64,000 nucleotides of DNA from Macrostomum lignano (Eukaryota). Shown piece by piece: positions 12,301 to 54,958 of this stretch. A model generated the notes under the pieces. It made no database searches, was not told where the DNA came from, and saw only the letters and a program-made list of their open reading frames with translations. How positions within the stretch are numbered: the first letter of the stretch is position 1; every line of letters starts with the position of its first letter. A program made the translations under genes and the position numbers. The stretch is from NCBI GenBank assembly GCA_002269645.1, contig NIVC01001992.1, forward strand, positions 62,001 through 126,000, in the 5' to 3' direction.

Positions 12301-14176
12301 TTCTCACTTGTGACTCTACTCTAACAAACCTCTGTTAATCTTTATTCTATTTAGAAACCCAACTAATTTCTATGAATTCCTTGCTAATAATTGAGGGAAT
12401 TGCAGCCTAGTGGTTAGAGCGTCGGACACACGACTGAAAGGTCAGGGGTTCGATTCTCGTCCTACTCGATACAATTTGTGTCTTTGAGCAAGACCTGAGG
12501 TGCCAGCATTAGATGGGGTAACTGAGGGTGTGTGTGGCGACCCCCCCCCCCAGTCCTTGGACTGAACAGCCGTACGCAACCTTCAGATGCGATGGCTGCG
12601 GCTGAGCTGTCGGTTGCACATCTGGCCATTAGGGCAGGCGTAATCTGTTATTATTATTAATAAATATTGATGTACCGTTTATCGTATTCTCTATAAGAAA
12701 TCACATTAAACCCAATCCCAACACAATTCTAAGCGCATTCCTAAAAAAGTTTGAGCTCACGCAGGCAGCCAAAAACGCTGAGTCAACTGAGCGAGACGCC
12801 AATATTAGGGGCGACGGCGCAGAGGCTAAAGCCCACCCCACCAGGCCACCACCCCACAGCGCGGACAGAGGGAGAGAGAAAGTACGCAAGGCGACACAAG
12901 GCGGGGGCATAGGAGAGGGGTTTAAAACTGGTTATTGGCTAGTCAAGACCAGTCACAAACCAACACATTATTGTAAATTCCTAGAAAATCTCGGTTATTG
13001 CAAATTCCTAGAAAATATTAGTCATTACGAGCTACATTCTTATCCTGTTTCTCCCATTCCCATAAATTCCCGTTTTTGCTGTTTCTTAGAAACTCTCATT
13101 CATTCCATTCCTAGAATATCAGGCCATTTATCCTTTTTCAAAAATTTTCTATTCATTTCGCGTCTCAAAAAGCCTCTCTCTATTAATTTATCCTAGCCCA
13201 TTCTTAGAATACCACAAGTACCATGCCATGCCATAGTCCATGTGATTCGTATATTTCACGAAATCCAAAATGCTCAATACAGTGCCGTTACCGTTACTCT
13301 ACTGCAGAATACTACAGGAAGAAAGACGACAGCATAGTCGGCCAGTCCGTGGTGTACTTTGCGGACACCCCGGCTGCCTTCGCTGACCAGCCGGCGGCAC
13401 CCAACAGGCGGAACTCGCCGAAACAGCTGAACCTGAGCCGCATTGTGGATCTGGTGAGTGCCCACTGGACTGCGGGACCTCCCCCTCTTCCATGGAGCTC
13501 TAAAGTGTCACATCTGGATTGGAAACCCAGAGGTAACTGTAGTCTGCACATTTAGTATTGGCTAGTCTTTCGCCCAAGGGCCGCTGTGTTTAGTAAGACA
13601 CGGGAAGCATTTTCTAAACGTCTGCAAGTTTTAACAACTTTTTGTGAAAAGGTTTTATGAGTACGAGCGTATTAAAACAAATAAATTTTCCCAATGTGTG
13701 CTAAATTATCGACAGATATTTTAATTTTGGGCCAAGCCAAATGTAGATCAAACGGAGAGTTAGGGTTAAGCCATGGCTTACGAGAGGGAGGCTTCAATGC
13801 CAATGCTCACAAGGGATGCTAATATCTTAGGCTGGACAGCCGGCTTTCAGGTCTGATGCTTTTTTACTTTATAACATCATTTTCCTTAGGATACTAGCAA
13901 TAGCGACCGTACACAGTGGCGCAGATCGCTTGTTTCACCTTCATGCATGTATACTCTGTACCTTGGGGCTCATATATATTCCTAAGGCCAACTGCAGTAT
14001 TTCCTATCCTAAACTGCCAGGCGCCAATCGCTGTTACGGACCAGACGCCAATGTTTGTTGTCTTGGAAATGTTTCGCAAACTGGGCCTCAGACAGACTCT
14101 GGTAACGCGAAATGGTCGCTTATTGGGCGTCATCACAAAGAAGGACGCACTTCGATATCTGGAAAATCTTTCTTAG
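6376..14176 (+). CDS. CLCN3: CLC-3/4/5-type endosomal Cl-/H+ exchanger with CBS domains, 8 coding exons, 839 aa
   Basis: Exons 6376-6616, 7274-7465, 8474-8631, 9347-10072, 10749-11030, 11667-12285, 13308-13453, 14021-14176. All introns are GT-AG and phase-consistent; total 2520 nt. Motifs: [20 protein letters not shown] (gating Glu), LEEASY (proton Glu), [13 protein letters not shown], and CBS-domain [19 protein letters not shown]. The exact paralogue (3/4/5) cannot be resolved, and exon 1 is less certain than the rest. Confidence 0.93.
7459..8445. repeat. 20-bp minisatellite (~49 units) in CLC intron 2; the unit contains the exon end and splice donor
   Basis: Unit GCTGCCGGTGAGGGGTGATG. A variant block TGCAGCCTGCCGGTGAGTTGTGATGGCTGATGG recurs at ~8001 and ~8248, indicating a higher-order duplication. 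Confidence 0.95.
8740..9320. repeat. ~25-26 bp minisatellite in CLC intron 3
   Basis: Unit CTAGCTCCCATCCAATCAGCATCGAA, about 22 copies. Confidence 0.95.
10095..10650. repeat. 16-bp/8-bp minisatellite in CLC intron 4
   Basis: Unit CATCATTCAGATGCTT repeated. It produces the spurious [16 protein letters not shown] ORFs. Confidence 0.95.
11310..11645. repeat. Degenerate ~47-bp tandem repeat in CLC intron 5
   Basis: ATTTAGTAGTCCCTGACCGCCCTCTTCACCTCTCCAATCCATGTTT-like units, about 6-7 copies. Confidence 0.8.
12394..12665 (+). mobile_element. tRNA-derived SINE, internally deleted copy, in CLC intron 6
   Basis: A-box-like GCCTAGTGGTTAGAGC and B-box GGTTCGATTC (~12447). Body shared with the copy at 27155 (ACAATTTGTGTCTT.GAGCAAGAC ... 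GGTGCCAGCATTAG.TGGGGTAA.TGAGGGTGTGTG). (TTA)n tail at ~12648. Confidence 0.8.
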
Positions 14177-16766: not shown

Positions 16767-19700
16767 TCAACTAGCCGCCTCGAACATTGAGTAGGGATTG
16801 TCCTTTTTTAGCGACTTCTTTCCCTCCTCGCCCGGGCCTTTGGGCACCTCGGTAAGGGCAAACAGGCGCAGAGTCTGGAAATCGCTGGGCCCGCCTCGGT
16901 CTACCAGTTTCGGCGTTAAACGCTCGTTTCGAAGCCTTGGCGAATTGAGGGTGGAGGTTAAATTAGGTGCAGTGTGTTTTAAAAAATATCATTTCGAAAC
17001 TATCAAAAATGGTTCAATAAAAATATCTACAAGGGTCATCCAACAATAAGCTTTGATTGAGTAAGGGATAGAATTCAGGGCTATGCACATCTGCTGCAGC
17101 CAATTATCGTCTAGTAAGGGATGGAAATTAGGGATATGCACATTTGTCAGCCAAATGAGCGTCTAGTAAGGGATAGAATTCAGAGCTTTGCACATCTGTC
17201 AGCCAATTAGCGTCTAGAAGGGTATAGAATTCAGATCTATGCACATTTGTCAGCCAATGAGCGTCTAGTAAGAGATAGAATTCAAATCTATGCACATCTG
17301 TCAGCCAATAAGCGAGGACCGAGGAGTAAGAGATAAAGCTCAGAGCTATTTATATCTGCCAGGCAATGAGAATCCAGTAAGGTATAGAATTCGAGGCAAT
17401 GCACATACAATTGAGTGGCAAGTAGTTTGCCGATTTCGAGCAGGAATTCATCTGATTCTATTCATATATACTACAAGTCAACAAAAAATTTCTACCAAAT
17501 TAAGAGATCAGTAGGGTGAAAAGGGTTATCCAGAACTTAGTCCTCACCGTTTTCCTTTGCCATCGACATAGGACTTTTCCCGCACCATGGCGCTGATCTC
17601 CGTGTCGTCCAGCAACTTTTGTTGCTTCTGTAAAAATGTCACCTGCTGTTGTTGTGGCTGCTGCTGTTGCTGCTGCTGCGGCTGTCCGGTGACACTTCCG
17701 CCGCTTGCTCCATTCTCATCCAGTGTTGTTTTTTCCTTATCCAGCTCTTTTATGGCTAGTGGCTCCGGCATGGACTTTGGATCAACGAGCACATCAATCG
17801 GCACCTTTAGCGGCCCGAACGAGTCCTCATTGTATAGGCTCCACTCGGTGGATTGGCCAAAGGTGCCAACGTACTCGCCTCGGCGCGTCCAAATTCGCAC
17901 GGTGAAATCCTCGGACGCTGTGACTACAAAGACTCGCTTCTGCATCAGCGTCACCACGTCTACTTGGCTGACAGTTTCCGTATGGGCGCGCCAGCGGAAC
18001 AGCAGCTCCGGGCAGAGGCTCTCGGGACCGTGCAGCGCGTACTCGTAGATGCTCCAGATGGAGACGTGGCCGAACCGGTCTCCGGTAACCAGGATCGTGT
18101 CATTGACGTCGACGCTCATGGCGGAGACCATGTGGCCGTGGCCGGGGTGGTTCTGAAACTGCGAGTACAGCTTGCCGCCCTGGTAGATGTTCCACAGGTG
18201 AATGCGACCCCGGGGTCCGGAGGCCAGGAGGCTCGCCGCCTCTCTGTTGCCCGCCCTGGTGCGCAGGAACAGCACGCGCGTCACCGACAGGTCGCCATCA
18301 AGGCACTCGTCCTCGTAGTCTGACGGCGGCGGCGGTGGTGGGATTTTGCAGTAGACGTGGCCGCTCACCGTGTTCCAGACTATGATGCTGCCGTCGTAGG
18401 AGCTGGTGGCCAGGTGGTTGGGCGGGCTGGACGCCACACTCAGGATGTCCTCGGTGTGCCCTCGCAGCTTGTCGTCTTTCCAGTAGTTCTCCGGGTACTG
18501 CACAGACTGAACGGCCTCGCCGCAGTCGTCCATGAACAGGCTGATTCTGCGGTCCCAGCCGACAGCGACAATAAAGCGGTTCTTGCTGACTTCCATGTAC
18601 AGAACCGCCGTGACCTCGGAGCGGCTGTGTCGGTCGCTCGATCGCAGGTGCAGCTCGCGCAGGCAGTGGCCGTTATTGTAATTCCAAACCCGGATGCTGC
18701 CAGCCCGGGAGCCAGTAACCAAGCGGCGGCCTGTGAAGTCCAGGCAGAGGCAGGTGGTGGCCGAGCCTACGTGGCTGGTGAATTCAAAAACCTTTTTGCC
18801 ATTCTCCACCTCCCAGACCTTCACTACGGAGTTCTCTGAAGCGCTGATGACGTGCTTAAAAGTCGGATTGTAAATCGCGCAGGTGATGGCCTCCTTGTGC
18901 GTCAGAGGGATGTCCGCCTGCACCTTCTGCTTCACCTTGATGTTGAGGATGGACACAACGTCTGTGGTGGCCAGCATCAGGGATTTGCTCTGCGGTGAAT
19001 AGTGAAAGCTCTGCAAGTCGCCGCGCACTTTGTGACCCTTAGGACGGATAGTGAGCAGACGGTTCTGGTCCAGGATGTCCCACACCTCGATGCACTTGTC
19101 CTGATAGACGCTGAATAGCCGGTTCTCGTCAGCCGCAATAGTCAGGTAGACAATTGGCGCACTGTGGCCTTGAAGGGTGCCGATCGGCTTCGAATTGACG
19201 TACGGATTCCAGATGCGAATAATGCGGTCCATCCCGCCCGTGACCAGGATGTTCTTCTGCTTGGAGATGTCGAACGTGCGAACCCCTTTGTGCACATAAA
19301 AGACTGTCTGGTCGGTGGCTTTGCGCAGCCGAGGCTGCATGATCGGCGAGATGAAGCTGCCTGGCTGAGCCTTCGGCGCCTGGACGGCACCGGCTCCCGC
19401 TCCAGCTGCAGCCATCGCGTCGCTGTCGCGCGCGGCCGCCCCCGAGCCATCGTGGTGATCCACAAGCGTCGACCCAATGCTGCAGCCGATCACCAAAGCC
19501 GTCGACTCGTCGTTCGAACAGCTGACCACCTGACGCAGAAATTCGTCGAATCGGATCTGGGCCACCCAGTCGTTGTGCACCTTCCAGCGGATGTACTCGA
19601 CCAGGCCTCCACTGTCCAGTGCGCGCTCCAGCGTCACCGCCGCGATGCCTTCGCTTTTCGGCTTCTTTTTCCAAGTTCGAAGACTTTCGCCAGTCTTGTG

Positions 19701-20798
19701 CAGCACAAGGATGTTCACGCAGCCGTTTTCGTCGCCCCAGAACAGCATCGACTCGTTGGAGTCGGTCTTCTTGTGACAAGTGTAGTCCAGGTTGAGGGGC
19801 ACCGAGTACAGGCCGGTCAGCTTGCAGTACGGCTCAAAGTTCGACAGCTCAAAGAACTCTAACTCGCGATCGCCGGTAGACACGACAATCTTTGTGAACT
19901 CGTTGATGATCATAAAGTGAGTTATCCACTTCTGCTTGGTTCGCTGCGTCTGTTCCGGCGTAATAATCGATCTTTTTCGCTTTAATTCGAGTTGCGAGTT
20001 CCAGAAAGACACGAGACCGTCTGAGCTGGCGCAGGCGAAACTGCCGTCGCTGAGGCCGACGATACGCACGATGGCGTCTCGGTGGATTGTGGTCTTTACC
20101 CTGGCGGGCAAGATAAACTTGATCTCCTTGTCCTTGAAGTATTGGCTCTCTTTCTCTTGGAATTCCAACTGCATGTAGGTGCAGAACTCGTCCCAGCTGA
20201 TGTAGCCGTTGCTGCTCCAGTCGATCTTCTGGAAGAGAGCGTCCAACTGGTTAAGTTTCGCGGTCGGCAAGTTGAGCAGGCGCCTCATCTCTTCCTTGAA
20301 CATCTTCAAATCGATTGACTCGTTCGAGTATTGAGCGAAGATCTTCTTGACCTTCTTCAGCTTGGCCAGGTCGATGTGCTCTTCGACTTTGCCGCGCAGA
20401 ATTGAGCCAATTTTTTCGTACTCGACCCGGTTGAGAAAGTACTTGTCTATGGCCTGCAGGTTGTCCGTCCGGTCAATGGTCGGCCTGCGCTGCTGCCGAA
20501 AGGTCCTCGCCTCGGCACGAGGCGATCGCGGACGTCGGGCAGAGCAACGCGCCTCGGCCGAGCTGACGACGCTGCCAGCGACCTCAGCTACTGACAGTGC
20601 GCCGCCTGCTGTCATCGGCCTGTCAACCAGCTTCGGTTGCATCGACTGTCGCTCGTCCAGCAGGCCAGTCACGTAGTGCTTTGGATGCGTCTCCAGATAG
20701 CCGGAGGCGGTAGCCGGGCGCTGCAGGACGCCGTTTACCAGCATGCTGCTGGGCTTCAGTACCGGCCCGGGCAGCTGGGTGTGCTCGCGACTCAGCAT
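16767..20798 (-). CDS. EF-hand + WD40-repeat protein (WDR49/WDR95/WDY-like), 1139 aa
   Basis: Exon 20798-17548 (3251 nt) is joined in phase 2 (CG|gtgag ... ccaag|G) to exon 16935-16767 (RLRNERLTPKLVDRGGPSDFQTLRLF...FEAAS*). EF loop DWSSNGYISWDEF. WD repeats include GGMDRIIRIWN, LQGHSAPI, ASENSVVKVWE, GSRAGSIRVWN, RGHTEDIL..SSYDGSIIVWN and ASEDFTVRIWT. An acceptor (ttttaag) just upstream of the ATG implies a further 5' exon. Confidence 0.88.
17050..17400. repeat. ~55-60 bp tandem repeat in the WD40 gene intron
   Basis: GTAAGGGATAGAATTCAG.GCTATGCACATCTGTCAGCCAAT.AGCGTCTA, about 6 copies. Confidence 0.85.
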
Positions 20799-21831
20799 TG
20801 CGGCGGTCCGGTACCTTAAAACGGAGTTTGGTATAATTTATTTATTAATGCGGTTGTTTGGTTAAAGTTTTTTTCAGCTTCACAATAGTGTTACAGAATA
20901 GATCTTATTTCGCTACACCAAAGGAGCTATTAATGAAATAATGCATCTTTCTACTAATTATATAACATAATCAAATAATACATACGTGTAAACATATATA
21001 CTTGTGAATATATATTTTTATATACCCCGCGTTGAAATCTCCGTGAACGATCCCAACAATCCGGTTGTGGTTGCACCGACAGCATCTGACAAACCATATA
21101 AGTGCACAGTAAAGTACAATACAAAAACTAATAATATTTTTAAATATTGCTCTATAACATCTGGTAAAATAAAAAACTAAAAATTGTTCCCCGATTAATT
21201 TTCTATAATACTATCTAATATTGGGGTCTAATCCACAAAAAAATATAACATCTGAGCATTATCGGAATATCCCACTGCAATTAAAACAAAACATAAAGTA
21301 AGTTTAAATTTATATGAGAAAGGATATCAGTAATATGTCTTAAAAGCATAATCTTCAAAAAAGTCTAAATGATTAATAAATGAAAAAGTTACAATTTCTG
21401 TATTTTAGGGTTTAAAAAAATTAAGACTTTTGCATAATAAATATATTACATTTTGAAACTACTTAAATGAATTTATATTTCATCCACATGTCTACATTGA
21501 CATATAAGCTGTGGTTTATAGTGATCATTACAAAAATGCAGTTCATGGCATGCACTGAGTTCTATACGAAAATAAATGACAAAATAAGGCGCTTAAGCTT
21601 ATTTGAAAAATAGAGGAAGCAATAAAATTCAGAATAAGAAGCAAAAGTTTTTAAAACAGTCACTTGTTGGGCAGCGCAGCTAGAGCTAGGTAATAGCTAT
21701 CATGTCTATTAACATTCTTCAAATCGAAGGATAAAGAGGAGGCTGCTGGATCTTTGATGTGTACTTTTTACATTTTTATTGTACATTTTGCGACGAATTA
21801 ACTTCGTTATTTATCGTTTTATAAACATTAG

Positions 21832-22783: not shown

Positions 22784-23389
22784 ATGAATCTACATGGTAT
22801 TCGTGGTATCGATTTTACAGCTCAACAAACCATATAACTATATTCATTGTACCATGCTGTACGCTCATAATTTAATTAAAGCTACTAAAAATACATGACA
22901 ATGTATTTGTGCATATGATTTTGTTATAGAAAATGATTAATTTTACTCGTGAAAAATTAATCATTGTCTGCCTCCAAAACAATATATATACACAATCTAT
23001 TATTAACTTACGACCATAAACAAACTGCAAAGCGGTAAAGATTGAATGAAAAAACCGTAGATTCCACATGCGCAAAGGAGAAAAATGCCGACGCCGGCAA
23101 AATGGACAAGCAATGGAAAAGTTTCCAAGAATCGCGGAAATCGGTAAGCAGCACAGAGTGGATCTCGTTCGATGAACTGAGGCTTCACACTGACGAGAAC
23201 AGCTGCTGGATTGCGTTAGAAGGCCTAGTCTTCGACGTTACCAGCTACTTAAAATTCCACCCAGGCGGCAAAGACAAGCTGCTGGAAGTGGCCGGCCGGG
23301 ATGCAACTAACGAATTCCGCTTGATCCACCGGTACGTGAACTTCAAAGCTGTGCTGCGCAAATTCTACCTGGGAAAGTTGAAATACTAA
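22784..23389 (+). CDS. Stand-alone cytochrome b5 heme-binding protein (CYB5R4/Irc21-type b5 domain), ~113 aa
   Basis: Main exon 23061-23389: ELRLHTDENSCWIALEGLVFDVTSYLKFHPGGKDKLLEVAGRDATNEFRLIHRYVN, with both axial His present. Probable micro-exon 22784-22796 (ATG AAT CTA CAT G|gtattc) joins in phase 1; the alternative start is ATG 23102. Confidence 0.85.
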
Positions 23390-29509: not shown

Positions 29510-30040
29510 AGTGGGGTGGCAGAATCATAGAGCAGGGTGGAAGAGTCATAGAGAGGGTGGAAGAGTCAGAGAGGGTGGCAGAGTCATAGAAAGGGTGGCA
29601 GAATCATAGATCAGGGTGGCAGAGTCATAGAGAGGGTGGCAGAGTCATAGAGAGGGTGGCAGAGTCATAGAGAGGGTGGCAGAGTCATAGAGAGGGTGGC
29701 AGAGTCATAGAGCGGAGTGGCAGAGTCATATAGCGGGTGGTAGAGTAAAGGAAGAGGGAGACAAGACAAGAGTGGCAGAGTCATAGAGAGGGTGGCAGAG
29801 TCATATAGCGGGTGGCAGAGTCATAGAGAGGGTGGCAGAGTCATAGAGAGGGTGGCAGAGTCATAGAGAGGGTGGCAGAGTCATATAGCGGGTGGCAGAG
29901 TCATAGAGAGGGTGGCAGAGTCATAGAGAGGGTGGCAGAGTCAGAGAGGGTGGCAGAGTCATAGAGAGGGTGGCAGAGTCACAGAGCGGGGTGGCAGAGT
30001 AAACGAAGAGGGAGACAAGACAAGAGTGGCAGAGTCAATG
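29510..30040. repeat. 20-bp minisatellite 3' of the coiled-coil gene
   Basis: Unit GAGAGGGTGGCAGAGTCATA, about 24 copies. A variant block GTAAA.GAAGAGGGAGACAAGACAAGAG occurs twice. Confidence 0.95.
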
Positions 30041-30103: not shown

Positions 30104-33100
30104 TCAAGACGTCTTGCAGTTGGGCGGCCGCTCCTCTTCCGGCGCAGCTGACGTCCGACGACGCGACGAGCGCGGCGAGTTGACTCCGCCGACGCTGGAA
30201 GCAGCGTTAGAAGCCGACTGAGTCGGCTGACGCGACCGGAGGGTGGCGGCTGGGACTGCGGCAGCGGCGGCGGCGACCGTGGCGAGTTCAGGCGTGGCAG
30301 TCGAAGCTGCGGCGGTCGGCTGAGCGGCGGCAGCGGCTGCGTTGGCTGGTCGCAGACTGCGATACATCTTACCGAGCTGGCGCAGTCGAACCTGCAATAT
30401 GTATCGTTGTTTAGCGTTGGCGCATAGCTGAATCTTATTTGGGGGAGGAAGGATATAAGGAATTCTTAATCGACGGAGATTATTTAGGGGAATTGAGGAA
30501 GATTCTTTAGGGGAATTAGGCGAGATTCTTAACGAAAATTAGGGGAGTGCATGAAAATCACCGAGTCATGAACAAGTTATATTTATATATATACTAGCTC
30601 GTATTATACTACTTTAGTAAAGCATGTTGGATATAATCGATTCTAACCTCAAGACCAGAAATGGTTGCTTTGGAGTCGCGCAGCTTAGGCAAATTTGGAC
30701 AATCCTGCTGGGCGCATTCAGAATTGGCGTCAAACGCCTTAAAGGCGGCCAACTCGGTCTCCAGAAATCCAACCTTCATCTTGGTGTTATCAAGCCGAGA
30801 CTGCAGCGTAGACACTTCGCTAACTGATTTTTCGATTTCCTGCCGAGCAGCAGCCAGACTGGCGGTTGTCTCGGCGATCGATTGCTCTTTGACCTTGATG
30901 TCATCATTAAGTTGGTGGATCTCCGCTTGAAACAGCTCGCGACTTGAGACTAACTCCTGGCTGCAGTCGGCGAGCTGTTTTTTAACATCGGACAGATCAG
31001 AAAGTACTGCCTCTCTATGCTCCTCGGCTCGGCTTAGCTCAACAACTTTAGTTGCCAGAGCGTTGGACAATTCTACATTTCTACGCTGCATCTCGGAGTG
31101 CTCACTCTCAAGAGCGGAAGCATTAGCGCAAGCGCCGTCTAGCTTAGTGTTTGCTTCCTTGAGCAGTTCCTCCATAGCGGCAAGTTCAGCTACTTTCGAA
31201 TCCAACGAAGACTTAGTCGAGCTATTCCAAGCCTCAAGGTTACGAATTCGACACTCCAATTCAACGTACTGCGATGCCTTAAGCTGAAATTCATTTTCAA
31301 GCTTTAATTTTTCATCGCATAAACTGGCAAAAGAAGATTCCAAAGCAGCTATCTTTGCTTCCGCTGACGAAATAGAATTTTGAAAAGCAATAATCTCATA
31401 TTCTTTCTGAAGAACTTCCGCGTTTAGCGATTCAACTCTGGCTGTGGAAGACGCAGCAGATTTCACTTCATTATCAAGCTTGTCACTTAGATAAGCGTTT
31501 TCCTCAGAAATCTTCGATAAAGCCTCTTCACTTTCAAGTAACTTCATCTGCGACTCACACAATCGGGATCGCAGCTCCTCCACCTCCTTCTCCTTCGACG
31601 ATTTCGACTCGCACACATGGTCGTGCTCTTCTTGTAGCGAACGCAGCTTCTCTTCCAGCATCTCCTTCTCGACTTCAACCTCTTGGATTCTGTCGCTAGA
31701 TTTTGTAAGCGCTTCGTCTTTAGATTCTAACAGCTGATTCACTTCAGCTAGACGAGATGTCAGATCACTGCAGTCGGTCTCGATCGCAGATTTAAGCTCC
31801 TCCGTGGTACGAACTTTCTCGCGAAGATCGTTCAGCTGCTGTTGATACTCCAGCACCTGTGCTTCAAGCTCAGTAGCTTTCTCAGAAGAGCACACTGCTT
31901 CGTTCTGTAACTCTGACAACCGCGATCGCAGCTCCTCCACCTCCTTCTCCTTCGACGATTTCGACTCGCACACATGGTCGTGCTCTTCTTGTAGCGAACG
32001 CAGCTTCTCTTCCAGCATCTCCTTCTCGACTTCAACCTCTTGGATTCTGTCGCTAGATTTTGTAAGCGCTTCGTCTTTAGATTCTAACAGCTGATTCACT
32101 TCAGCTAGACGAGATGTCAGATCACTGCAGTCGGTCTCGATCGCAGATTTAAGCTCCTCCGTGGTACGAACTTTCTCGCGAAGATCGTTCAGCTGCTGTT
32201 GATACTCCAGCACCTGTGCTTCAAGCTCAGTAGCTTTCTCAGAAGAGCACACTGCTTCGTTCTGTAACTCTGACAACCGCGATCGCAGCTCCTCCACCTC
32301 CTTCTCCTTCGACGATTTCGACTCGCACACATGGTCGTGCTCTTCTTGTAGCGAACGCAGCTTCTCTTCCAGCATCTCCTTCTCGACTTCAACCTCTTGG
32401 ATTCTGTCGCTAGATTTTGTAAGCGCTTCGTCTTTAGATTCTAACAGCTGATTCACTTCAGCTAGACGAGATGTCAGATCACTGCAGTCGGTCTCGATCG
32501 CAGATTTAAGCTCCTCCGTGGTACGAACTTTCTCGCGAAGATCGTTCAGCTGCTGTTGATACTCCAGCACCTGTGCTTCAAGCTCAGTAGCTTTCTCAGA
32601 AGAGCACACTGCTTCGTTCTGTAACTCTGACAACCGCGATCGCAGCTCCTCCACCTCCTTCTCCTTCGACGATTTCGACTCGCACACATGGTCGTGCTCT
32701 TCTTGTAGCGAACGCAGCTTCTCTTCCAGCATCTCCTTCTCGACTTCAACCTCTTGGATTCTGTCGCTAGATTTTGTAAGCGCTTCGTCTTTAGATTCTA
32801 ACAGCTGATTCACTTCAGCTAGACGAGATGTCAGATCACTGCAGTCGGTCTCGATCGCAGATTTAAGCTCCTCCGTGGTACGAACTTTCTCGCGAAGATC
32901 GTTCAGCTGCTGTTGATACTCCAGCACCTGTGCTTCAAGCTCAGTAGCTTTCTCAGAAGAGCACACTGCTTCGTTCTGTAACTCTGACAACCGCGATCGC
33001 AGCTCCTCCACCTCCTCCTTCGACGATTTCGACTCGCACACATGGTCGTGCTCTTCTTGTAGCGAACGCAGCTTCTCTTCCAGCATCTCCTTCTCGACTT

Positions 33101-34739
33101 CAACCTCTTGGATTCTGTCGCTAGATTTTGTAAGCGCTTCGTCTTTAGATTCTAACAGCTGATTCACTTCAGCTAGACGAGATGTCAGATCACTGCAGTC
33201 GGTCTCGATCGCAGATTTAAGCTCCTCCGTGGTACGAACTTTCTCGCGAAGATCGTTCAGCTGCTGTTGATACTCCAGCACCTGTGCTTCAAGCTCAGTA
33301 GCTTTCTCAGAAGAGCACACTGCTTCGTTCTGTAACTCTGACAACCGCGATCGCAGCTCCTCCACCTCCTTCTCCTTCGACGATTTCGACTCGCACACAT
33401 GGTCGTGCTCTTCTTGTAGCGAACGCAGCTTCTCTTCCAGCATCTCCTTCTCGACCTCCACCTCTTTAAAGCGATTAGTGAGAAGTGATAGACGAGAATT
33501 TAGGTCAATGGACTCGCATTCTAAATAGCCTTTGCAATCTTCTGTCGATTGCAGTTCGCAGCGCAAATCATCTAGTTGCTGTTGGTAATGTAGAAGTTGC
33601 TCTTTCAGGTTGGAACCCTCTTTGGAAGAACTCGTGGCTTCGTCCTGTAGTTTCGAAAGTCTGCTCTGCAAGTTATCAACTTGTCTATCTTGGAGTGACT
33701 TTTCATGACTGAGATTGTTGTAGTTAGTTTGCAGTAACTGAAGCTGTTCACACCGCTGTTTTTCTGTGTACTCTTTAGAGCCGCAGTCGTTTTCCTTAAT
33801 TGATAGTATTTGTCTTTGCAATTCACTATTTTCTTCCCGGAGTTTCTTAGCTTCCTCAGGCCAAATAGACTCCTCTTTTATTTGAGTTAGTTGAGCGCTT
33901 AACTCTTCGTTATTGCGTTGAAGAATTTGATACTGATCTTTTAGCTCGTTAATTTGCTGCCGAAGATTATTACTAGTTGGCGATTGGATAGTTTCGAAAC
34001 TAGTTTGTGTATCAGCATCACGTTTAATGCACCTGCTAGTGTTGCTTGCACTGCTCGTAAGTTGATTCAGGCGGACTTCTTCTGACTTCTGTTGCCCTAC
34101 TTTGCCCGACTCCGCTGAATTGTTGACATCAGAAAGCTTTTTTTGAAGCTCAGCGATTAGAACGTCTTTCTCAGCTACCAGCTCTTTTTGATTAGTCAGA
34201 TCCCGAACCAAGCGACTGTTGGTGGCTAAAACTTTTTCAAGGTTTGGAATTTCATCTCGATTGCTTGAACCAGACAGTTGAGAAGTAATTTTGACAGAAG
34301 GGGTGCTGCAAATGTTCTCTGCACCTGTGTCCTGCTCGGTGTTTAATGCAGTCTGATTAATAGAAAACTCCAAATTGCTGGCTCCTTCAATATTAGCAGC
34401 TGGACCTGGCTCTCTTATTGTCTTCGGTAGAGGAATGGATGTCTGCTTGATTGGCCTCGACGATTGGGCCTGGCTTGTATCCAATGACGGTACTGGCAAA
34501 TTGCTTTCTGCAAAAGGCAGAAATGGGAAAAAGGTGATGGGAACCTGTGAATAATGTATCCTGTACTCGAACTGACAGTGCTTAAATTACTTACTTTGGA
34601 GCCGAATTTTCTTGATACTCGGCTCATTTGCAGACAATTGCTGACCAAAGATACGTGGACGAGCAATTTTTGAGGTTCTGATAGTATCAGAATCTGCTTT
34701 TGGAGGGTTTACAGTACCCTCATCGGGTGTCTTCGACAT
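30104..34739 (-). CDS. Long coiled-coil protein (1430 aa) with a 119-aa tandem repeat and a C-terminal CaaX box (CKTS)
   Basis: Exons 34739-34595 (MSKTPDEG...KKIRLQ, A|gtaagt), 34507-30648 (GAG|gttag) and 30391-30104 (VRLRQLGK...PPNCKTS*). Phases are consistent; total 4293 nt. E/L/K/S/Q-rich heptad composition. Confidence 0.85.
31560..33460 (-). repeat. Coding 357-bp tandem repeat (~5.3 near-identical copies)
   Basis: Identical alternative-frame ORFs are spaced exactly 357 nt apart (31832, 32189, 32546, 32903). One copy lacks 3 nt (KEKEV becomes KEEV). Confidence 0.95.
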
Positions 34740-37483
34740 TAGAATAAGTTAGATGAGGCACTGAAAAGCCAAAAAACAACTTGCATGTAATTTTTTGGTT
34801 AAAGTAGAAATTAAAGAAAGTTAAAATCAGTATTATAGAATAATTTTGCTTATACAACTATGACTGATGATATAGTAGCTTTTAAAATGAGTATTGCTAA
34901 CATAAGCAATAAAAAGAACAAAAAGATTTGTTTTTATCTTTTGAATACATACAAATGGGACTAATAGACACTATGCCTATGAAAGTATTTAGGCCTTTGA
35001 AGTCTTATTTTTATATTGATAGTAGTGAAAAAATTGCAATTTTTAGCCATTTTTTGCACTTTTAGGTAGGAAGACAACTAAGACTTAAACATTCTCTGTA
35101 AAGAGCTTAGGATGGGTGCAAAATTTGGTGCCATTTGGTTGAGTGGTAGTGGTTTAGGAGTCCATAGCAAACAAATTGTATATAGACCCACATAGACATA
35201 CTTAATATTTTTAGTGGAATATTTTTAATTAAATTAATTTAATAATAAATTAATAAATTAATTTTTAATTTAATTAAATTTTTTTATAAACTAACATTCC
35301 TAATTTAGTAAGTAAAATGTTTTTTAATAATCACTTTTTAATTTCTTACTTTTAGAAATTTTTTTAATTAGAGATGTTTTAACTACAAAGTTTTGCAAAC
35401 AGATATTTACATTTTTCTAGCATACTATGTAATAGATTTGAGAGTGTAGCTATAGGTCATTCCATGAGAGGGTCCCATCATGTTTTTGAACATCAAATTT
35501 TCGAGTTTCAAAAAGTAGTCTGTATTATGGTTCAAAAGTCTCTTGTGAAATGACCTCTAGTAGATAAATAAATATAAATACTTTCAATTTCCAACTTTTT
35601 GAAACTTTTGCTAGACACTCAGGGGATATCCAAAATTAAATATAGATAGATAATGTTAGTTTCTGTGAAAAATCTTTTTACCTTAAAACTTTCTATGCAC
35701 CAGTTGTTAGCTATTAACATCTTGGTTAGAGGGCCTTCCAAGGTCCAATAATTATCTATCTACTCTTAAAAAGACCCAATATATCAATATCTATGAAAAA
35801 TATATAGTTTAATTATCTTTTAGACTCCAAGGTCTAGATTGTATAATAGTGTATGTCAGAACAAGAATCTTATTATAGCTAAATATACATTAGTATATGC
35901 CAAAAATAGAAAATTTACATAAATTGTATGACAAAAATTTCTCCTAAAGTCATTCAGTTTTTACAAGTTGATTGTGTAGAGTTTTCAAAACAATTTTTTA
36001 TAAGAAAACCTCTTTATAATATAACAAATATGTTCATTTAAATAAAAAAAATATACATCTAAGAAAATGATGCATAGGCCTAATTTAAGTTTTTAGCTAG
36101 AAGGAATTTTCTTTTTTTTACATAAACAGATTTATTAACGTTGAATTTTTATACTTGGCATGAATTTGTTAACAAAAATCCATATACTAAAAATGGTATG
36201 TCTGTGTCTATATGATCAATTAGAGAAAAATAGCTAGACTGATTTTCTTTGAACTTACACTGTTCTTGGACTGTTATTTGTTATAATTAAAAACTTTTAA
36301 AATTCAACTTTAAATTTTATCATGAACATATAAGCCTACCATTGCTCAAAGTTTAAATTTTATAATTTAGTATATTTATTTGCTTTTTAACTCTGTTTTA
36401 GGATACAACAACAATAAGGAATAAAATTGCTTTAGCACATGGTACATAGGCCTAAAAGAAAAAAATGGTTAAATTTTTTCAGTGCATATAGGACAGTACA
36501 CCTTCCTAACTATATGGTGTCTACTAACAAATTTACTATTTCTTAGGGAAAATTCTGGCTTCTAGTCAATCTACTACAAGACAATCCAGTGACAGACAAT
36601 TTGGCAATAGTCAAAGTGGTAACAAATGATCTAGCAACAGATTTTGATTTATAGATTTTATATGAAATTTAGATACAAATGAAACTTTATATGATTGTTT
36701 GTCGCTGGATCATTCTATTGCCAGATTGACTGGATATTAAAATTCTCATGTGCAACAAGGTCCTAGAGAGTCCAATACTATATGCATAGTATATATCAAA
36801 GATAAGGCAATTTTTTTACTTAGGATGATGCATTGATCCATATCATTGGTGATGATATGGCAAGGTGGTTGGCTTTAGCTACATATAGGTGGGTTTATAC
36901 ATGTAGACTAACTAAAAATGAAGCTCAAATTTGAAATTAGCACCATTGAAAAACCCTATCATGGACAAAATTATAAGTCTATAACCTTATCAAAACTGAA
37001 ACTATTCTACACCTATCTCCTTAAAGTTAAAGAAGGTCCCATACTGTAGGTCTACTGCCATGCCCATAGCCATAGCGACATAGGGCCTAGCCTAGCCATG
37101 GGATGGCATAGGCCTATCATTTCACAATCTGCTTCTGCTATAATATGAAAATCAATTAAATGAACAATAATAATTATTTATAATCAAAGCCAGTTTAATC
37201 CCCTTTGAACTAGAATACAGTAGATCATATATCCACAGTAGATTATATCATATCCTAACATCAAGTGTAGGCAAGCACAAGGCCCTAGGCTTGGCAAAGG
37301 CCGCAGCAAAGCTCAGCTTTCATAGCTTAATGACAATTTAGCCTACGTTCAAGGCCCTAAGCTGAAGCAATCAAGTTAAATCATTAACCGTAGGCCTAGC
37401 TGAATTCAATTTCGAGGACATGACATCGGGATTCGGAATTGGCCGTTGAACTAGGACTTCGTTGTGACGAGTGCCGCGCGAGG

Positions 37484-40329
37484 GGTCCCTGGACATTTCG
37501 GTGACAAGACGTTTCGGTGACAACCTTTTCGGTGACACTTCAGGACGTTTCGGTGACAAATTTGGACAATTCGGTGACACGTTTTAAAAATGAAAGTTTA
37601 TTAGTGTGAAAGAGAATATACTCATGAACAACAGTTAATACTTAAAACTCGTCATATTTTATTGATTTGCGGTGATTTCATCACTGACTTTGTTATATCC
37701 CTATACTGAAATTAAATTATTTCATTTTTTTATGAAAGTATTAGAGCTGAGTAAGATCGTATTGACCTATTGCATACTTTACCTGTTTCAGATGTCCTTG
37801 ATCACGTAGAAAGCCATGAATCGAGTAAAGTTGCACAAATGGCCGTCGGACAATTGAAAACGTACCGTCCATGAACAACTCGTGGGCACTACTGATCAGT
37901 AGTGTCAATTGATTATTAGTAGCAAATACTAAGTGCCGTCTTCCTCCAACCTGGACATCACTTCTGAGAAATCCATTGGGCAAGGCTTTCCAACTGCAGT
38001 TGGAAGTTTAAATCCCTATAGGCTCCTCTGGCCGTCCTCTTTCGCAAAACCGGTTTGCAGCTCTAATTAGATTTGTTGGATTCGGCAAGTTCGCTGCCGT
38101 GGAGGAAGTGAGTTCGCGCAGTATAGTCTATCATCATCTGTAAGCTGTGCCGCAGATTTAAAAACATCCGTTGAGGCAGCAAATTTTACGTCTCGATAAA
38201 TCTTCCGAGTAGCAGAAGCACCAAAGACGAGACGAGACGACGTGCATGGCTGTGCCCGCTTTTCCCATGCTTAAACTCTTCACCGGCACTGCGAATTAGA
38301 GTGCGCAACAAGGGGTATGATGACTGCGTTGAGTGCAACGATAGTGTTCACGAGCACCACGCTGACGATGAAGCCCATAGGAGTACCCATTCGACGATAT
38401 TACAAGAACGTTCCGTCGGCTGCCTCCGTCTTGCATGACTTCAAAAGTCTCTAACTCTCGACCTCCCTGAACTATTGGCCTGGGTTCTGGGTCACTAACT
38501 GATTCATAGAGATCGTGAATCATCCCGCCATCATCAGCTACAACCTCCTCATCCAGCAGCGCTGTGAATATGCGTCTAGAATTCGAAGAACTAGCGCTCG
38601 AGTTTGCTAGAAGTTATATACTCGTATTAGCGCCTCGGATACCGAGTCCTTAAAGTCTGCATGCGCATTCATATTTCATACGCAATCAGTTGTTCTACTT
38701 TGAATGGCGTGGCAAAAACAAACATTATATCACCGTACGAGCGATGCTTCTTTGCTAGCAATGATTTTGCTTGAGAATGGTAGCAAACGCGCAACCAAAT
38801 CATTGGTGCTTGCCATTAGAATTAGCATTGTTAGTAAATGCAATGTAGATATTGAAATTCCAGTAAGCATAATTGGTTCACTTAACAAGCTTTACTGTTC
38901 TGCAACATGGAACCATCAAAGGTGCTAATATCGATCGAACAATGAAGAAAGATTAAATACTGGACTTGCCAATTTGCATGTACATGTAGCAACAAACGTT
39001 TAAGCAGGGATAAGTTGTCCATGCGTAAGCAAGTTCTGAAAAGCAAATTATACAATTTGCTACTTATCTTTGCTACTTATCTACTTATCTTTAGCTTAAT
39101 GTGGCCTCGCGTCCCTTCCCTCGTCTTTCCTTTGACTTTCCTGGTCACTCTGGTCAGCAATCAGGCAATTATCGGTTAACCGAAGTGCGGAGCGAATGTA
39201 TATGAAATTACTGTTAGTCTCTCATTTCTCTCTAAGCTCTAACGTGTGACCCTTTCCGAACTTTACCTTTCCCATTAGACACGTGTTTCGCAAATTTTAA
39301 CATCGCGCCATATACACTTATTTCCTTCCTATCGCCTTGTACCCATGCGTGCTGCATGTTATTCACACGTGTACAGTATTAAGCAACTTGCATCGATTCT
39401 CGCACAAACCAAAAAAGAGTAAAATTGGAGCAGCTACATCCCGCGGCCGGAGGAAAATAGCTGATCGGGGCCACTGGCGAGACTTGCCGCCATTGGCGGC
39501 AATTAACTCGATCCCTTGCATGGCGAGTGCCATATATACCACCAGCTTGGGGCCGACAGGAGGCGGCCGCCCCGGGGGACACAATCGTACATGGAAAAGC
39601 CGCTGCTTTGCTTTCAAAGCTCATGCCATATACATGTAAACCCGCCGTCGTCATAACGTGATCATAGTCATATAGTCATGATCATAGCATCATATCATCA
39701 TACTCGTAGTCATGTCATGAAGTCATAGTGATCATAGTCATAGATCGTCATACCAAACCCCCCGGCCTGTCCCCGCGAAATAGTCGGGGCCTTAACTTTT
39801 TAAATAGTTTTTTCCACCAAGTGTAACTGATCTTTCCAAAAGTCAAAACTCGAAGTCATTTCTCGCATGGTTCATATGTACATGTACATGTATACATGCA
39901 ATCTGTGAAACTGATGTTGATCGATTCAGAAGGCTGCCATTATACATGTAGCTGCCATAAAATTATTGAAGTTTGCGGTGTGCATCGAAACATTACATTA
40001 AATAACATTTGCAATAATTCAGGAGGTAATTACTGATATACATGTGTAGTCTCGGCCAACCTCTTTTATCTGAACAGGTGCAGAATGACCCTTTATTTAA
40101 GTGTATAGATATAACAGTCACACACAACAACAATAGTCAACGCACAACAATAAAATATGACGAGTTTTAACTATTAAACTCTTGTTCATGAGTATATTGT
40201 CTTACAGACTAATAAACTTTCATTTTTGAAGCGTGTCACCGAATTGTCTAAATTTGTCACCGAAACGTCCTAAAGTGTCACCGAAAAGGTTGTCACCGAA
40301 ACGTCTTGTCACCGAAATGTCCAGGGACC
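37484..40329. mobile_element. Mutator-like element (MULE) with long TIRs, internally deleted
   Basis: ~190-bp TIRs beginning GGTCCCTGGACATTTCGGTGACAAGACG, with tandem TTTCGGTGACA motifs (37484-~37675 and ~40150-40329). TSD (C)GCGCGAGG at 37476-37483 and 40330-40337. Confidence 0.92.
37741..38523 (-). pseudogene. Frameshifted, truncated FLYWCH + MULE transposase
   Basis: SNGYSYGLHRQRGAREHYRCTQR...C (FLYWCH-like), then NPTNLIRAANRF...RPEEP, then LPNGFLRSDV...LFMDGTFSIVRRPFVQLYSIH (MULE DGTF motif). The segments are in different frames and the C-terminal DDE part is missing. Confidence 0.85.
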
Positions 40330-42978: not shown

Positions 42979-45900
42979 TTAGAGATTAAAGTTCAGATTA
43001 GCTTCAATGAACAACAGCTGTTGTGCAGTTTCAGCTGAGAGCCGATTCCTCTTCTTGGTCACAACTAGTCCCTCAGCACTGAAGAGACATTCTGAATCTG
43101 CGCTCGAGGCAGGCACAACCAGAATGTGCCTGGTAAGCATTGCCAGTTGAGCATACTTGTGCCTATTGTCTGCCCACCAACGCATTGTGGCAGCTGTTTG
43201 CTGACTAGTTTTACCAGGTCGCGGAAGCACTGGTTCCTGCAGATAAGCAGGCACCAGAGTCTCCACTGAAATTGGCTTTGCAGTGGTAGTCCACAAGTCC
43301 AGAGCCTCCAAGTCGTTAAGAACAACTGGAGCACAGTCGGTGCCGTTGCCACATGGAGCAGGCAGGTCAGTCTGAGCAACTGTCAGTTTTTTCAGAATGG
43401 CTTGCGCTTGGTTCAGTGCTACTGCATCACTACGAAAGCCCACATCTTGATAATGTGGGTCCAGCAATGTAGCAACTACAAACAACTCATCAGTCAAGTT
43501 CAGGATATTAGAAAAGCGATGCTTGACAGATGCCAGCAGATCTCTAGCCAGTGTCTAAACACCTTCAGCTGCTGGATCGCCATGTGTGGCACATTCCAGG
43601 AAAGCACAAAGTCCTCGGAGCTGTTGAGAAGAGAAGATAAATATAAAAATTAAATTTAAACAAATATATCAATAATAGTACGGTAAAGTTAATTAATTTT
43701 CGTATCATACAAGATGTCAATACTCATTAAAAAAGTATATAAAAGAGTATTCAGCATTTAAATTATTTAGGGGTGGTGCTTGCTATTGTACTTGCTATTG
43801 TATGATATTGATACTTGTTGGCACTTACTTTTGGTAGCACAGTGCTGATCAGTCCTCCACCAGAAAGGCTCTGACCAAAATCCCGAAATGGCTTCAGAAC
43901 ATAGATGAGTGGGTTGAGCAGATTCCATTCATTCACTGACAGGGAGCCTGCTTGGATGTTGTACTTTGCGCAGTACAGACACACAACAGCAGCCTGGAAA
44001 TAGCATAAAATTCGCAAATTATCACTACTTTCTTAATTTTTCTGCTTATTTATAGCTAATTGACTGTTATTCATACATGCAGATATTTTGATTCCACTTT
44101 TATTGTGTCTATTTTTATCTACTCAATAATTTTATTCTTATAAGGGCTTGAATGGAAACAAAGAAACAGTGTTATTATTATTAGTAGTATAAATTTTAAA
44201 ATTAAATGACTTTGTGGTAAATACCTGATCACGAAAGGACCCAGCATGGCCAACTGTGAATCCCATTGTGTCCTTACATCCTGCATAAGGCCCTTGGTGG
44301 ATGTGGCATTTACTTCCTTGTAGCATTGTTCCCACTCACGATGTGCAAGTGTCATGAATTTTGGAAATGCAATCAAATAGAAATAGACTTTAATTCCTAT
44401 CTCAGCCACGCAAATTTTGGATTCTCAATCTCAATCTCAATGCCCATAATCAATCTTCCAAAAACCAACAAATCTTTTGCACAATAGTCTTGTAGTCTTA
44501 CCTCTAACTCTCGGCAGGAAACTTGCATGGCAGAGCCCTCATCAGTCACAACTGACTGGACCTTCTGGCTAATAGTGCTCAAATGTGTCTAGCACTGGAT
44601 GAAGAGCTTTAACAATGTTGCCACCTGTTGGAGCTCCTTCAATTGGAGTACTACACAATGTAGCTCGGCATAGCTTGAAGTCTTCTGTGAGCACTTGAGC
44701 AGTTAAACTCACTACAGACCACTTTCCTTGAATAGAGGTCCACTCATTGCTGGTGCATGCCACTGCAGTGCTCTCATCCAAAAGATTCTGTACCGATTGT
44801 TGCACATCGTTGTACAGTGCTGGTATGACAACCTCAGCAAAATGTTTGCGGCCAGGCAAAACATAGTTTGGTGCCAAGATTCTCATCAATTGTTGAAAGC
44901 CATTGTATTCAACCATGGAAAATGGTTGATGATCCACGGCTAGCATCTGGCCTGAGAAGAGACAAAAGAGCATATAGTTTAAATAATTGATCATATCACA
45001 TTGTCTCTTAACTTAAGCCCTGTTCCTGTTATGTGTATCGATATACTTCACCCATTCAAATCATTATTAATAGCTCTAAGCTCTTCAATTTGTCTGTCTG
45101 TTTACTCCTAAACTTTCTAGTTGCTTCTGGTCCTATACTGACAGTACTGTAGCTTTTCCAGCTTAACTATCTTAGACAATTTTACAGCACAGGGTAAGCA
45201 TGCATAGGCTATTTCCATGAGTGTGACGGTCGAAGGTTGGTACATTAATTTCACAAAAAATATATGAAAAAAAGGGTTTTGCAGCCTTTTTTTCATCAAA
45301 AAATAATAACCAACTAGATCTTTTGAACTTGTTTAACTTGTGACACAGAAGTTTTGGATTCTCAATTAATTCAGCTTATTGTGCATGTGACGGTCAAAGT
45401 TGAAAAACTCAAAGGTAAAGGGGAGTGAATTGTTTTTTTGTGTTTTCTTTGGTCTTTGTGATCTTAGAGCTATAAAAATCAATACACAAACTGAAAATTA
45501 GCCATACTTAGTAATATAAAATATTAAACGCATAAAAACAAGCAGAAAAAAGTTTTGACACTTTTCTCTTGTGATGGTCAAAGTGTGACGGTCAAAGGTA
45601 CCAACTGTGAAAATTTTATTTTCAACTCTGGTAAGGAAATATAAGTGTAGGACTAATAAATACTTTTACAGTAACCTTTTTCATGATAAATAACTAATTG
45701 AATAAATCATATCAGAGATGGGGGTTATGGTTGGAGCTTTAGATGGAAGGCAGCTGGAAAATGACCCCAGCATCTTACTTAATCATCTTACTTACTTACT
45801 TAGACAACTTACTCAATTTTTGTGTGATGGTCGAAGGCAACTTTGCTGTGTTTTATCTATTGATTAACAATATATATACCAATGAAATTTTATAACATTA

Positions 45901-50268: not shown

Positions 50269-52123
50269 GGGTCTATGAAATTTGCTAGCAGGAAATCTGC
50301 TAGCCAAAGTTTGCTAGCAAGAAATTTGCTTGCCAAAATCTGCTAGCCAAAGTTTGCTAGCCGAAATGTGCTAGCCGAAATCTGCTAGCCGAAGTTTGCT
50401 AGCCAAAATGTGCTAGCCAAAATCTGCTAGCCAAAGTTTGCTAGCCAAAATGTGCTAGCCAAAATCTGCTAGCCGAAATGTGCTAGCCAAAATCTGCTAG
50501 CCAAAGTTTGCTAGCCAAAATGTGCTAGCCAAAATCTGCTAGCCGAAATGTGCTAGCCAAAATCTGCTAGCCAAAGTTTGCTAGCCAAAGTTTGCTAGCC
50601 AAAATGTGCTAGCCGAAATCTGCTAGCCGAAATCTGCTAGCTGAAGTTTGCTAGCAGGAATTTTGCTAGCAAGGATTTTGCTAGCGAAAATCTGCTAATG
50701 ATAATCTAACCAAAACCGGCAAACAGCAATTTACGAATTTGTAATTTGCTAGAGACATTTTTTCTTGTCCAATTTGGCAAGAAACTTTGCAGGACTTATC
50801 AAGCAGGACAAATAAATTTGCATTTTTCACTCTAATGACTCTCTTTGTCGTGCTAATTAGCAGTGATCTGCTAATTGCAATATATAATAATAATTGCAGC
50901 CTGCATTGTTGTATCGTAATATAATGCAATTAAAAATTACTAAATCAGAAATTTCTTTGTAGCTAGCATTCATATGACAAGAATCTGAATGTAATTTATA
51001 TACAAAATGTGCTTGTTAATTCTATTCTTCTTAACACCTTTCAAAATGTGGCTACTTTGGTCAAGATAAATTACCAATTTTCTTTTTTTAAGTGTTTAGA
51101 AAGAGGCCGATCGCGGGCTAAAATAAAATTAAGTGTGCCCAACAATGCAATCATAAAATGTAGACATTTTGGCTTTTTACAGCAATTATTTATCAGATAT
51201 GGCTTTTAGTTATAGAAAGATTTGGGATTTTTAACCACTTCTCTTGACTATTTTTAGCCAAAACCATGCAATACCATTGCCTGGAAACAAGTCAATCTTT
51301 TGACATGGGTTGCAAAAAATCGTTTGCACTTTGATATTTGACATTTGATAATGTTTTAGCATTATCAGCTGTAAGGCCATAGTTCAGGTAGCTCAGGCAG
51401 CTGTAGTTCAGGTAGTTAAATTTAAACTTATCTATATACACACAACTTTCAGTCTTAATGGCTGGTAGTGGCAGTATATAAGTATATGGCAGTATATGGT
51501 ATATAAGTTATATATTTACTTGTACGAATCAAAGCAGCTCAAATCGGAATCAAAACACAGCAAATAACATGCAACAGCTATGAGAGCAAGGCAGCTAGCA
51601 AAATTCCTGCTAGCAGATTTCGGCTAGCAAAATCCTCGCTAGCAAAATTCCTGCTAGCAAACTTCGGCTAGCAGATTTCGGCTAGCGGATTTCGGCTAGC
51701 AAACTTCGGCTAGCAGATTTCGTCTAGCAAATTTCGGCTAGCAGATTTCGTCTAGCACATTTCGGCTAGCAGATTTCGTCTAGCAAACTTCGGCTAGCAG
51801 ATTTTGGCTAGCACATTTCGGCTAGCACATTTCGGCTAGCACATTTCGGCTAGCACATTTCGGCTAGCACATTTCGGCTCGCAAACTTCGACTAGCAGAT
51901 TTTGGCTAGCACATTTCGGCTAGCACATTTCGGCTAGCACATTTCGGCTAGCACATTTCGGCTCGCAAACTTCGACTAGCAAACTTCGGCTAGCACATTT
52001 CGGCTAGCACATTTCGGCTAGCACATTTCGGCTCGCAAACTTCGGCTAGCAGATTTCGGCAAGCAAATTTCTCGCTAGCAAACTTCGGCTAGCAGATTTC
52101 CTGCTAGCAGATCTCGTACTCCC
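50269..52123. mobile_element. Foldback/MULE-like non-autonomous element with inverted tandem-array arms
   Basis: Left array (TGCTAGCCRAAAT.T)n at 50280-50690 and its reverse complement (A.ATTTCGGCTAGCA)n at 51590-52110. GGG...CCC termini. AAGAAAAA flanks on both sides (50261-50268 and 52124-52131). Confidence 0.8.
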
Positions 52124-52497
52124 AAGAAAAAAGTAGTTCAAATACTATATAACACAATACTATATGGCACATTATGAGCAGTTTTGAAATGCTCAAATTT
52201 TAATAGGGACATGTTTGGTATTGCTCTGAAATTTTATGCTTCAATAAAACAATCGTGAAGAAGACTGTACCCTGTAGGTAAAATTTTAAATTATTTAAAC
52301 AATCTTGCTGTCTATAATAGTGAATATAATCTGACAATTTATAAGTTAACAGTTTTATAGATGTATTGTATAGTTGATGAAAGTTACATAAGTCGTATTT
52401 CCATTTCTAAATAGAATTAAAAAGAACTTTTATAACTAAATTTAGTAAATTTATTAGTGGATAGCAGTATAAAATTATATGGATATCTTCAGCCGTC

Positions 52498-54810: not shown

Positions 54811-54958
54811 CTGCTCCTTGAAAGATTCGTCAGTGAAAGTATTCACAGAAGTGTCCCTGAATCAGTGAATTAAACTTCGACAAAGCTTTAATACGAGGGA
54901 GGGATATACTCGTACTTCAGTATGAGCGTAGTGAATCTCTAATCAGCTAGCTTTTCTG

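Follow-up and report, generated by a model that had tools for sequence, protein, structure and literature searches.

A stretch of 64,000 nt of the Macrostomum lignano genome (assembly GCA_002269645.1, contig NIVC01001992.1, positions 62,001 to 126,000, forward strand; hereafter the window) was analysed around a minus-strand gene that encodes a coiled-coil protein of 1430 amino acids (aa) ending in CKTS. The protein carries 5.4 copies of a 119-aa repeat, and two further loci of the same assembly hold the gene with 21.4 and at least 30.8 copies. It is best explained, with a probability of about one half, as a transcribed, M. lignano-restricted coiled-coil spacer or tether that is possibly farnesyl-anchored and whose length changes by unequal recombination. 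The gene sits in a transgenesis-capable model flatworm.

Gene model and protein architecture

The gene spans 34739-30104 in three exons (34739-34595, 34507-30648 and 30391-30104). The spliced coding sequence (CDS) of 4293 nt gives 1430 aa with the C-terminus PPNCKTS*. Three M. lignano protein models were used for comparison: P0057 (PAA57501.1, 255 aa, 95% identity, same start as the window gene), P0058 (UniProt A0A1I8HCS0, 374 aa) and P0071 (PAA65872.1, 728 aa), a member of the P0057 cluster that agrees with the P0057 and P0058 models. The genomic copies are called L003 and L002. Features are listed in the direction of transcription; pI is the isoelectric point, NLS a nuclear localisation signal, and pN/pS the ratio of non-synonymous to synonymous change.

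34761..34770, minus strand: acceptor-like ggcttttcag, 21 nt 5' of the ATG, read from the sequence
34595..34739, minus strand: exon 1, 145 nt, aa 1-48 plus 1 nt; start and junction the same in paralogue models P0057 and P0071
34257..34739, minus strand: basic disordered head, aa 1-132, pI 9.5, with NLS-like KKIR, SNLP (34505-34494) and TSIP (34442-34431)
34508..34594, minus strand: intron 1, 87 nt, gtaagt...ttttgcag, GT..AG
30648..34507, minus strand: exon 2, 3860 nt, aa 49-1335
33491..33754, minus strand: older diverged copy of the repeat unit, aa 302-389, 43% identity over 88 ungapped residues, E=8e-20
31559..33466, minus strand: 357-bp in-frame tandem array, 5.4 copies, 99% identity
30723..31558, minus strand: non-repeated C-terminal rod, aa 1032-1310, with heptad periodicity; pN/pS 0.23 against L003
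30392..30647, minus strand: intron 2, 256 nt, gttaga...attgcag; spliced form in P0058, donor and acceptor conserved in L003
30104..30391, minus strand: exon 3, 288 nt, basic Ala-rich tail with SPRSSRRRTS, CKTS at 30118-30107 and TGA at 30106-30104

The three-exon, 1430-aa model proposed by a first-pass annotation of the window was reproduced exactly, and its junctions, start and stop were matched by paralogue models, those of GenBank derived from RNA-seq and one from UniProt. The junction of exons 1 and 2 (...KKIRLQKSNLPVPS...) is present in P0057 and P0071, both RNA-seq-derived GenBank models. The junction of exons 2 and 3 (...GLEVRLRQL...) is present in P0058, which also ends in PPNCKTS. Were intron 2 retained, the open reading frame (ORF) would continue for another 39 nt and stop at 30609 (...GLEVRIDYIQHALLK*). 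The GC content of exon 3 is 0.69 against 0.47 for exon 2, which fits coding of low complexity rich in GCN, CGN and CCN codons. An in-frame TAA stands at 34751-34749, 12 nt 5' of the ATG at 34739. The ggcttttcag upstream of it is a candidate spliced-leader trans-splice acceptor that may be used at this gene; about 39% of M. lignano genes are trans-spliced (PMC5730564).

The GenBank gene at the window locus has a CDS that ends exactly at 30104, so that CKTS is terminal, as had been claimed. Its product is 1193 aa, 237 aa shorter than the model, and 237 aa correspond to one unit of 119 aa and one of 118 aa. The shortfall is probably due to short-read collapse of identical repeats, which remains a guess: the product reconstructed on this assumption (1430 aa minus 237 aa of repeat) had no exact match in the protein collection. 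The 1430-aa model itself had no exact match there either. The GenBank annotation of the assembly was built from RNA-seq using StringTie/TACO, the TBONE boundary pipeline and TransDecoder (PMC5730564), and the gene is therefore transcribed. No expression data for locus tags Mlig030421 and Mlig029970 were found in the literature and its supplements.

The protein has three parts. The head (aa 1-132) is rich in Ser, Pro and Thr and basic, and contains K-K-x-R and R-P-R clusters that resemble an NLS as a pattern match. AlphaFold (AF2, single sequence) placed no secondary structure in aa 51-132 and helices from about aa 133; its per-residue confidence (pLDDT) stayed under 50 for most residues through aa 131 and climbed just ahead of the first helix. 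The rod (about 1180 aa) is acidic (pI 4.6) and heptad-based. Between about aa 200 and 1300 its hydrophobic residues recur with a strong period of 3.5 residues (z 3-8), and no proline occurs from aa 280 to 1315. The tail, the last 120 aa, is basic (pI 10.5), rich in Ala, Ser, Arg and Pro, and of low complexity.

The 17-heptad unit and its copy number

One repeat unit is 119 aa, or 17 x 7, in a single unbroken heptad register, and the long rod with a 17-heptad repeat described in the first-pass annotation was borne out by this match and by the periodicity. In the protein the units begin at aa 397, 516, 634, 753, 872 and 991. Those of the window are 0-3 nt apart, and one unit is without one codon. 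Since a unit comprises 17 whole heptads without a change of register, gain or loss of units keeps both the reading frame and the phase of the coiled coil. The older copy at aa 302-389, at 43% identity, indicates that unit duplication recurred.

Two other loci of the assembly hold the gene within syntenic flanks that are 96-98% identical. L003 (NIVC01002479.1, 11271-18872) has 21.4 units of the 357-bp repeat. L002 (NIVC01001609.1, 4214-15214) has at least 30.8 units, its array extending beyond the stretch analysed; the 30 complete intervals between its units each measure exactly 357 nt, with no interruption of the frame over 4039 aa. At 0.1485 nm per residue the predicted rod lengths are about 175 nm (window), about 460 nm (L003) and more than 620 nm (L002). 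The idea that the number of repeats determines rod length is strongly upheld by these paralogues, which have 21.4 units and at least 30.8 where the window has 5.4. The three loci, that of the window included, are homeologous or allelic. The tails of P0058 and L003 are the same as that of the window except for an in-frame 6-nt insertion. Directly 3' of the window stop lies a 20-nt minisatellite (about 25 copies, 29514..30000), probably in the 3' untranslated region, which occupies the same position downstream of the L003 copy.

The three loci form a natural length series in which it could be asked to what extent coiled-coil length is important in vivo, and the array is a marker of repeat instability after the recent M. 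lignano genome duplication. They also illustrate how annotation derived from short reads fragments or collapses such genes: the product is 1193 aa in the window, and GenBank lists the L002 gene as three separate 'genes' (728, 655 and 264 aa).

These properties suggest how the protein could work. The acidic rod is probably a parallel dimer, flanked by the basic head of about 130 aa and the basic Ala/Ser/Arg-rich tail of about 120 aa. CKTS, as a probable substrate of farnesyltransferase, would anchor the C-terminal end by a lipid to a membrane or to a prenyl-binding partner. The basic head end would be left free to bind an acidic surface, for instance that of microtubules, of nucleic acid or of a neighbouring rod. 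Unequal recombination would add and remove 17-heptad units; as the 357-bp unit is exactly 17 heptads, such events would be harmless to frame and heptad register, and rod length would not be fixed. Gene structure, architecture, the absence of homologues and the differing repeat numbers are established by the data; dimerisation, farnesylation, anchoring and the binding partners are what we infer from these features.

Short motifs, homologues and competing explanations

CKTS directly precedes the stop codon and has the form of a CaaX box at sequence level, on which the annotated CDS end and the paralogues agree. Its Cys is the only one in the 120-aa tail and lies at position -4, with X=S; when the tail was shuffled, a Cys fell at this position together with a final S, M, Q, A or C with P of about 0.004. 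Of the features put forward in favour of a CENP-F-like protein, this CaaX-like end alone stands out. Farnesylated boxes among CENP-E, CENP-F, Spindly and DNAJA1 are CKTQ, CKVQ and CQTS, and with these natural substrates each position of CKTS has a precedent. The non-canonical CaaX boxes of the four proteins were fully modified by human farnesyltransferase in a reporter (PMC11152559). Judged by its letters, CKTS is a plausible farnesylation box, and the odds that it is farnesylated are roughly even.

In the 1430 aa, [ST]x[IL]P is matched by SNLP (aa 50) and TSIP (aa 71) and nowhere else. The SxIP-like motifs announced for the N-terminus are therefore present, as far as the letters go; two or more such motifs are expected from the composition of the head with P=0.07, which is near chance and unremarkable. 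Both lie in a basic, disordered stretch rich in Ser and Pro and poor in acidic residues, the setting typical of EB1-binding SxIP proteins, and around TSIP the count is 4 K/R vs 1 D/E. Conservation of SNLP and TSIP was seen in 95%-identical copies only. A KEN box at aa 286 was considered as a degron and rejected, the 95%-identical paralogue P0071 having QEN.

Homologues were sought with HMMER, using the contiguous 1200-aa translation of exon 2 as query in an exhaustive search of 1.84 billion representative proteins. Only two real matches were obtained, P0057 and P0058, both from M. lignano, and no homologue outside the species was found among these proteins. Another 12 matches (E 5e-15 to 6e-4, 20-35% identity), which include kinetoplastid FAZ1 and a kinesin-14-like protein, have unrelated Pfam content and were therefore regarded as coiled-coil noise. 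Both halves of the protein, scanned with Pfam, matched coiled-coil families only, all below threshold, and a sequence search of the PDB gave noise only (E>=0.01). By these searches the gene is lineage-restricted, with homologues only within M. lignano.

Several known systems were compared with the flatworm protein. Golgins and other long coiled-coil tethers share the plan of a C-terminally membrane-anchored rod with a disordered N-terminal capture region, anchoring of the flatworm protein being proposed. They differ in that no golgin-type transmembrane, GRIP or GRAB anchor was matched in it by Pfam, and its proposed anchor is a lipid; we know of no description of lipid anchoring for golgins. 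Kinetoplastid FAZ1-type proteins (P0060) likewise have near-identical coiled-coil units in variable number, and P0060 was the second-best non-self HMMER match after P0059 (E=3.8e-10, 27% identity). The likeness is confined to generic heptad sequence, however, and the conserved domain of FAZ1 is absent from the flatworm protein by Pfam.

A number of points weigh against the proposed tether. For CKTS, the comparison of sequences reached no further than copies of 95-99% identity. Constraint is weak in the sequence comparisons. The overall pN/pS against L003 is 0.45, from 15 synonymous and 23 non-synonymous changes; the non-repeated C-terminal rod has 0.23 and the N-terminal part about 0.5. With L002 as the reference, pN/pS of the N-terminal part rises to 1.4 (3 synonymous, 15 non-synonymous). 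In exon 3, four substitutions against L003 (1 synonymous, 3 non-synonymous), besides the 6-nt insertion, are too few to show constraint. The gene is fast-evolving, and the counts are too small to tell if the motifs of head and tail are protected. At L003, 18 one-base deletions break the frame. They repeat at a few unit offsets (4, 49, 313 and others), several of which are variable sites, and this recurrence makes them look like consensus error; they are probably due to consensus polishing rather than to independent mutations, with a pseudogene as a possible alternative. The 29 identical units of L002 may in part be an artefact of polishing, and a PacBio assembly may misstate how many identical 357-bp copies an array has. 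Finally, several-fold variation in length, together with the weak constraint, opposes any role that needs a defined spacing. On this reasoning a transverse filament of the synaptonemal complex was rejected (several-fold variation in rod length vs the fixed width of the complex), as was an axonemal ruler.

A rather unlikely alternative, which nevertheless merits attention, is a non-prenylated cytoskeletal filament, for instance of ciliated epidermal cells or of a reproductive structure, in which the basic ends would bind the acidic rods of neighbours in the manner of intermediate filaments and CKTS would be incidental. An acidic rod between basic ends is a pattern of self-assembling filaments, and the tolerance of very different rod lengths together with fast evolution would fit a bulk structural or matrix role. 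The locus tags of a paralogue (Mlig030421g6) and of a CFAP337/WDY-like cilia gene in the window (g10) share a prefix, which suggests one RNA-seq transcriptional unit over both, as a polycistron or by read-through. An incidental CKTS sits poorly with the single tail Cys placed exactly at -4 with a favourable X (P ~0.004). The protein also has no intermediate-filament motifs, the Filament domain stayed below threshold, and no expression data were found in the literature.

The proposed tether can also be cast in a more specific form, which we consider improbable: an independently evolved, farnesyl-anchored giant coiled coil that would take on the work of CENP-F- or lamin-type linkers between microtubules and the surface of a membrane or kinetochore. 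A coding minisatellite would then set its reach, 17 heptads (about 18 nm) at a time, from about 175 to more than 600 nm among the homeologous copies of one animal.

A lamin-like scaffold of the nuclear envelope, which would combine an NLS-bearing head with a rod and a CaaX tail at the inner nuclear membrane, is very improbable. Lamins, Dictyostelium NE81 and Drosophila Kugelkern resemble the flatworm protein in an NLS-like cluster (here K-K-x-R and R-P-R), in basic ends around an acidic rod and in a CaaX-like end. The trypanosome lamina protein NUP-1 has large near-perfect coiled-coil repeats, to which the near-identical large repeats of the flatworm rod can be likened. Unlike lamins, the flatworm protein reached only 18.9 bits for the Pfam Filament domain vs a cutoff of 40, showed no Pfam match to the lamin-tail Ig-fold domain in its C-terminal 440 aa, and was without the rod-end motifs LNDR and YRKLLEGE (YRxLLEGE) in a regular-expression search. 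The NLS is a pattern match only, and flatworms have ordinary lamins.

The first-pass annotation had put the gene forward as a diverged CENP-F- or CENP-E-like corona or microtubule tether, with an SxIP head that binds EB1 at plus ends and a farnesylated tail that targets the kinetochore or nuclear envelope in mitosis; this is now highly improbable. The gross logic is alike. CENP-F (mitosin) and C. elegans HCP-1/2 are very long coiled coils with internal tandem repeats and basic terminal regions, and vertebrate CENP-F ends in a farnesylated CKxX box, of which the flatworm CKTS has the sequence form only. CENP-E has a long stalk and the terminal box CKTQ, from which CKTS differs in X alone. TSIP lies in the basic context described above, and farnesylated corona proteins are known (PMC11152559, PMC10630089).

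Several differences stand against this. CENP-F shares no detectable sequence or domain homology with the flatworm protein, its head is a coiled-coil microtubule-binding domain where the flatworm head is disordered, and it has two diverged repeats against at least 5 near-identical 119-aa units and hypervariable length. Pfam gave no match at E<=1 to the CENP-F N-terminal domain (CENP-F_N) in aa 1-515 or to the C-terminal Rb-binding domain in aa 991-1430. The CENP-F/LEK1 leucine-rich repeats (CENP-F_leu_zip, PF10473) scored 12.9 bits (E=0.12, cutoff 34.5), at the level of noise and ranked under 14 of the 22 coiled-coil families listed for the segment. CENP-E has an N-terminal kinesin motor; none was matched by Pfam in the flatworm protein, whose first 132 aa are predicted to be disordered. 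Neither a CC1 box (AAxxG) nor a Spindly motif was found by regular-expression search of the protein. Among the hallmarks of CENP-F that were looked for, only the form of the last four residues is shared. The SxIP-like pair is near chance (P=0.07), the KEN is QEN in a near-identical paralogue, and no homologue outside the species was found among the 1.84 billion proteins searched. Weak constraint and variation from 5 to 31 units are unexpected for an essential mitotic protein. The sequence thus offers no positive support for the CENP-F idea, and the gene is not a demonstrable relative of CENP-F or CENP-E. A functional analogy, as a farnesylated long coiled coil with basic ends, is possible, and the idea matters only if experiments on localisation and farnesylation back it.

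A gene drifting to loss after the recent genome duplication, its repeat expansion being neutral minisatellite instability and its function unconstrained, is equally hard to credit: pN/pS values of 0.45 to 1.4, the 18 frame-breaking deletions of L003, a window packed with minisatellites and the extensive duplicated blocks of the assembly (PMC5730564) would agree with it, but very long open frames are kept (1430 aa in the window, more than 4039 aa at L002), the C-terminal non-repeated rod has a pN/pS of 0.23, the gene is transcribed, and the L003 deletions fall at recurrent offsets, as polishing errors would.

Other features of the window

Further genes lie on the 3' side of the coiled-coil gene. 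A small single-exon gene for a cytochrome b5-like protein of 95 aa (23102-23389, plus strand) is on the opposite strand, between the coiled-coil gene and the CFAP337/WDY-like gene with EF-hand and WD40 domains (BOX15_Mlig030421g10, window 16767-20813, minus strand). The 1084-aa WD40/EF-hand ORF of the latter (17544-20798) is 100% identical to the M. lignano protein in GenBank, and contig NIVC01001992.1 around it agrees with window 30813-6767 at 100%, so that the window is flatworm DNA. A gene for a ClC-type chloride channel, with Voltage_CLC and CBS domains, occupies 6767-14176 (plus strand). Minisatellites at 7455-8444 (20 nt x 49), 8731-9319 and 10119-10648 (16 nt x 33) give long spurious ORFs beside its real exons.

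Upstream of the coiled-coil gene, ORF fragments at 37741-38523 had no Pfam match, and the remnant of a hAT transposase was found at 42979-44994 (minus strand; C-terminal dimerisation domain, E=1e-16). No match was obtained when the 64-kb window was scanned for Rfam families and tRNA genes. Many more minisatellites, with periods of 14 to 85 nt, lie at 50278-62809, the largest at 55787-57004 (21 nt x 58); the richness of the window in tandem repeats is as reported for the M. lignano genome.

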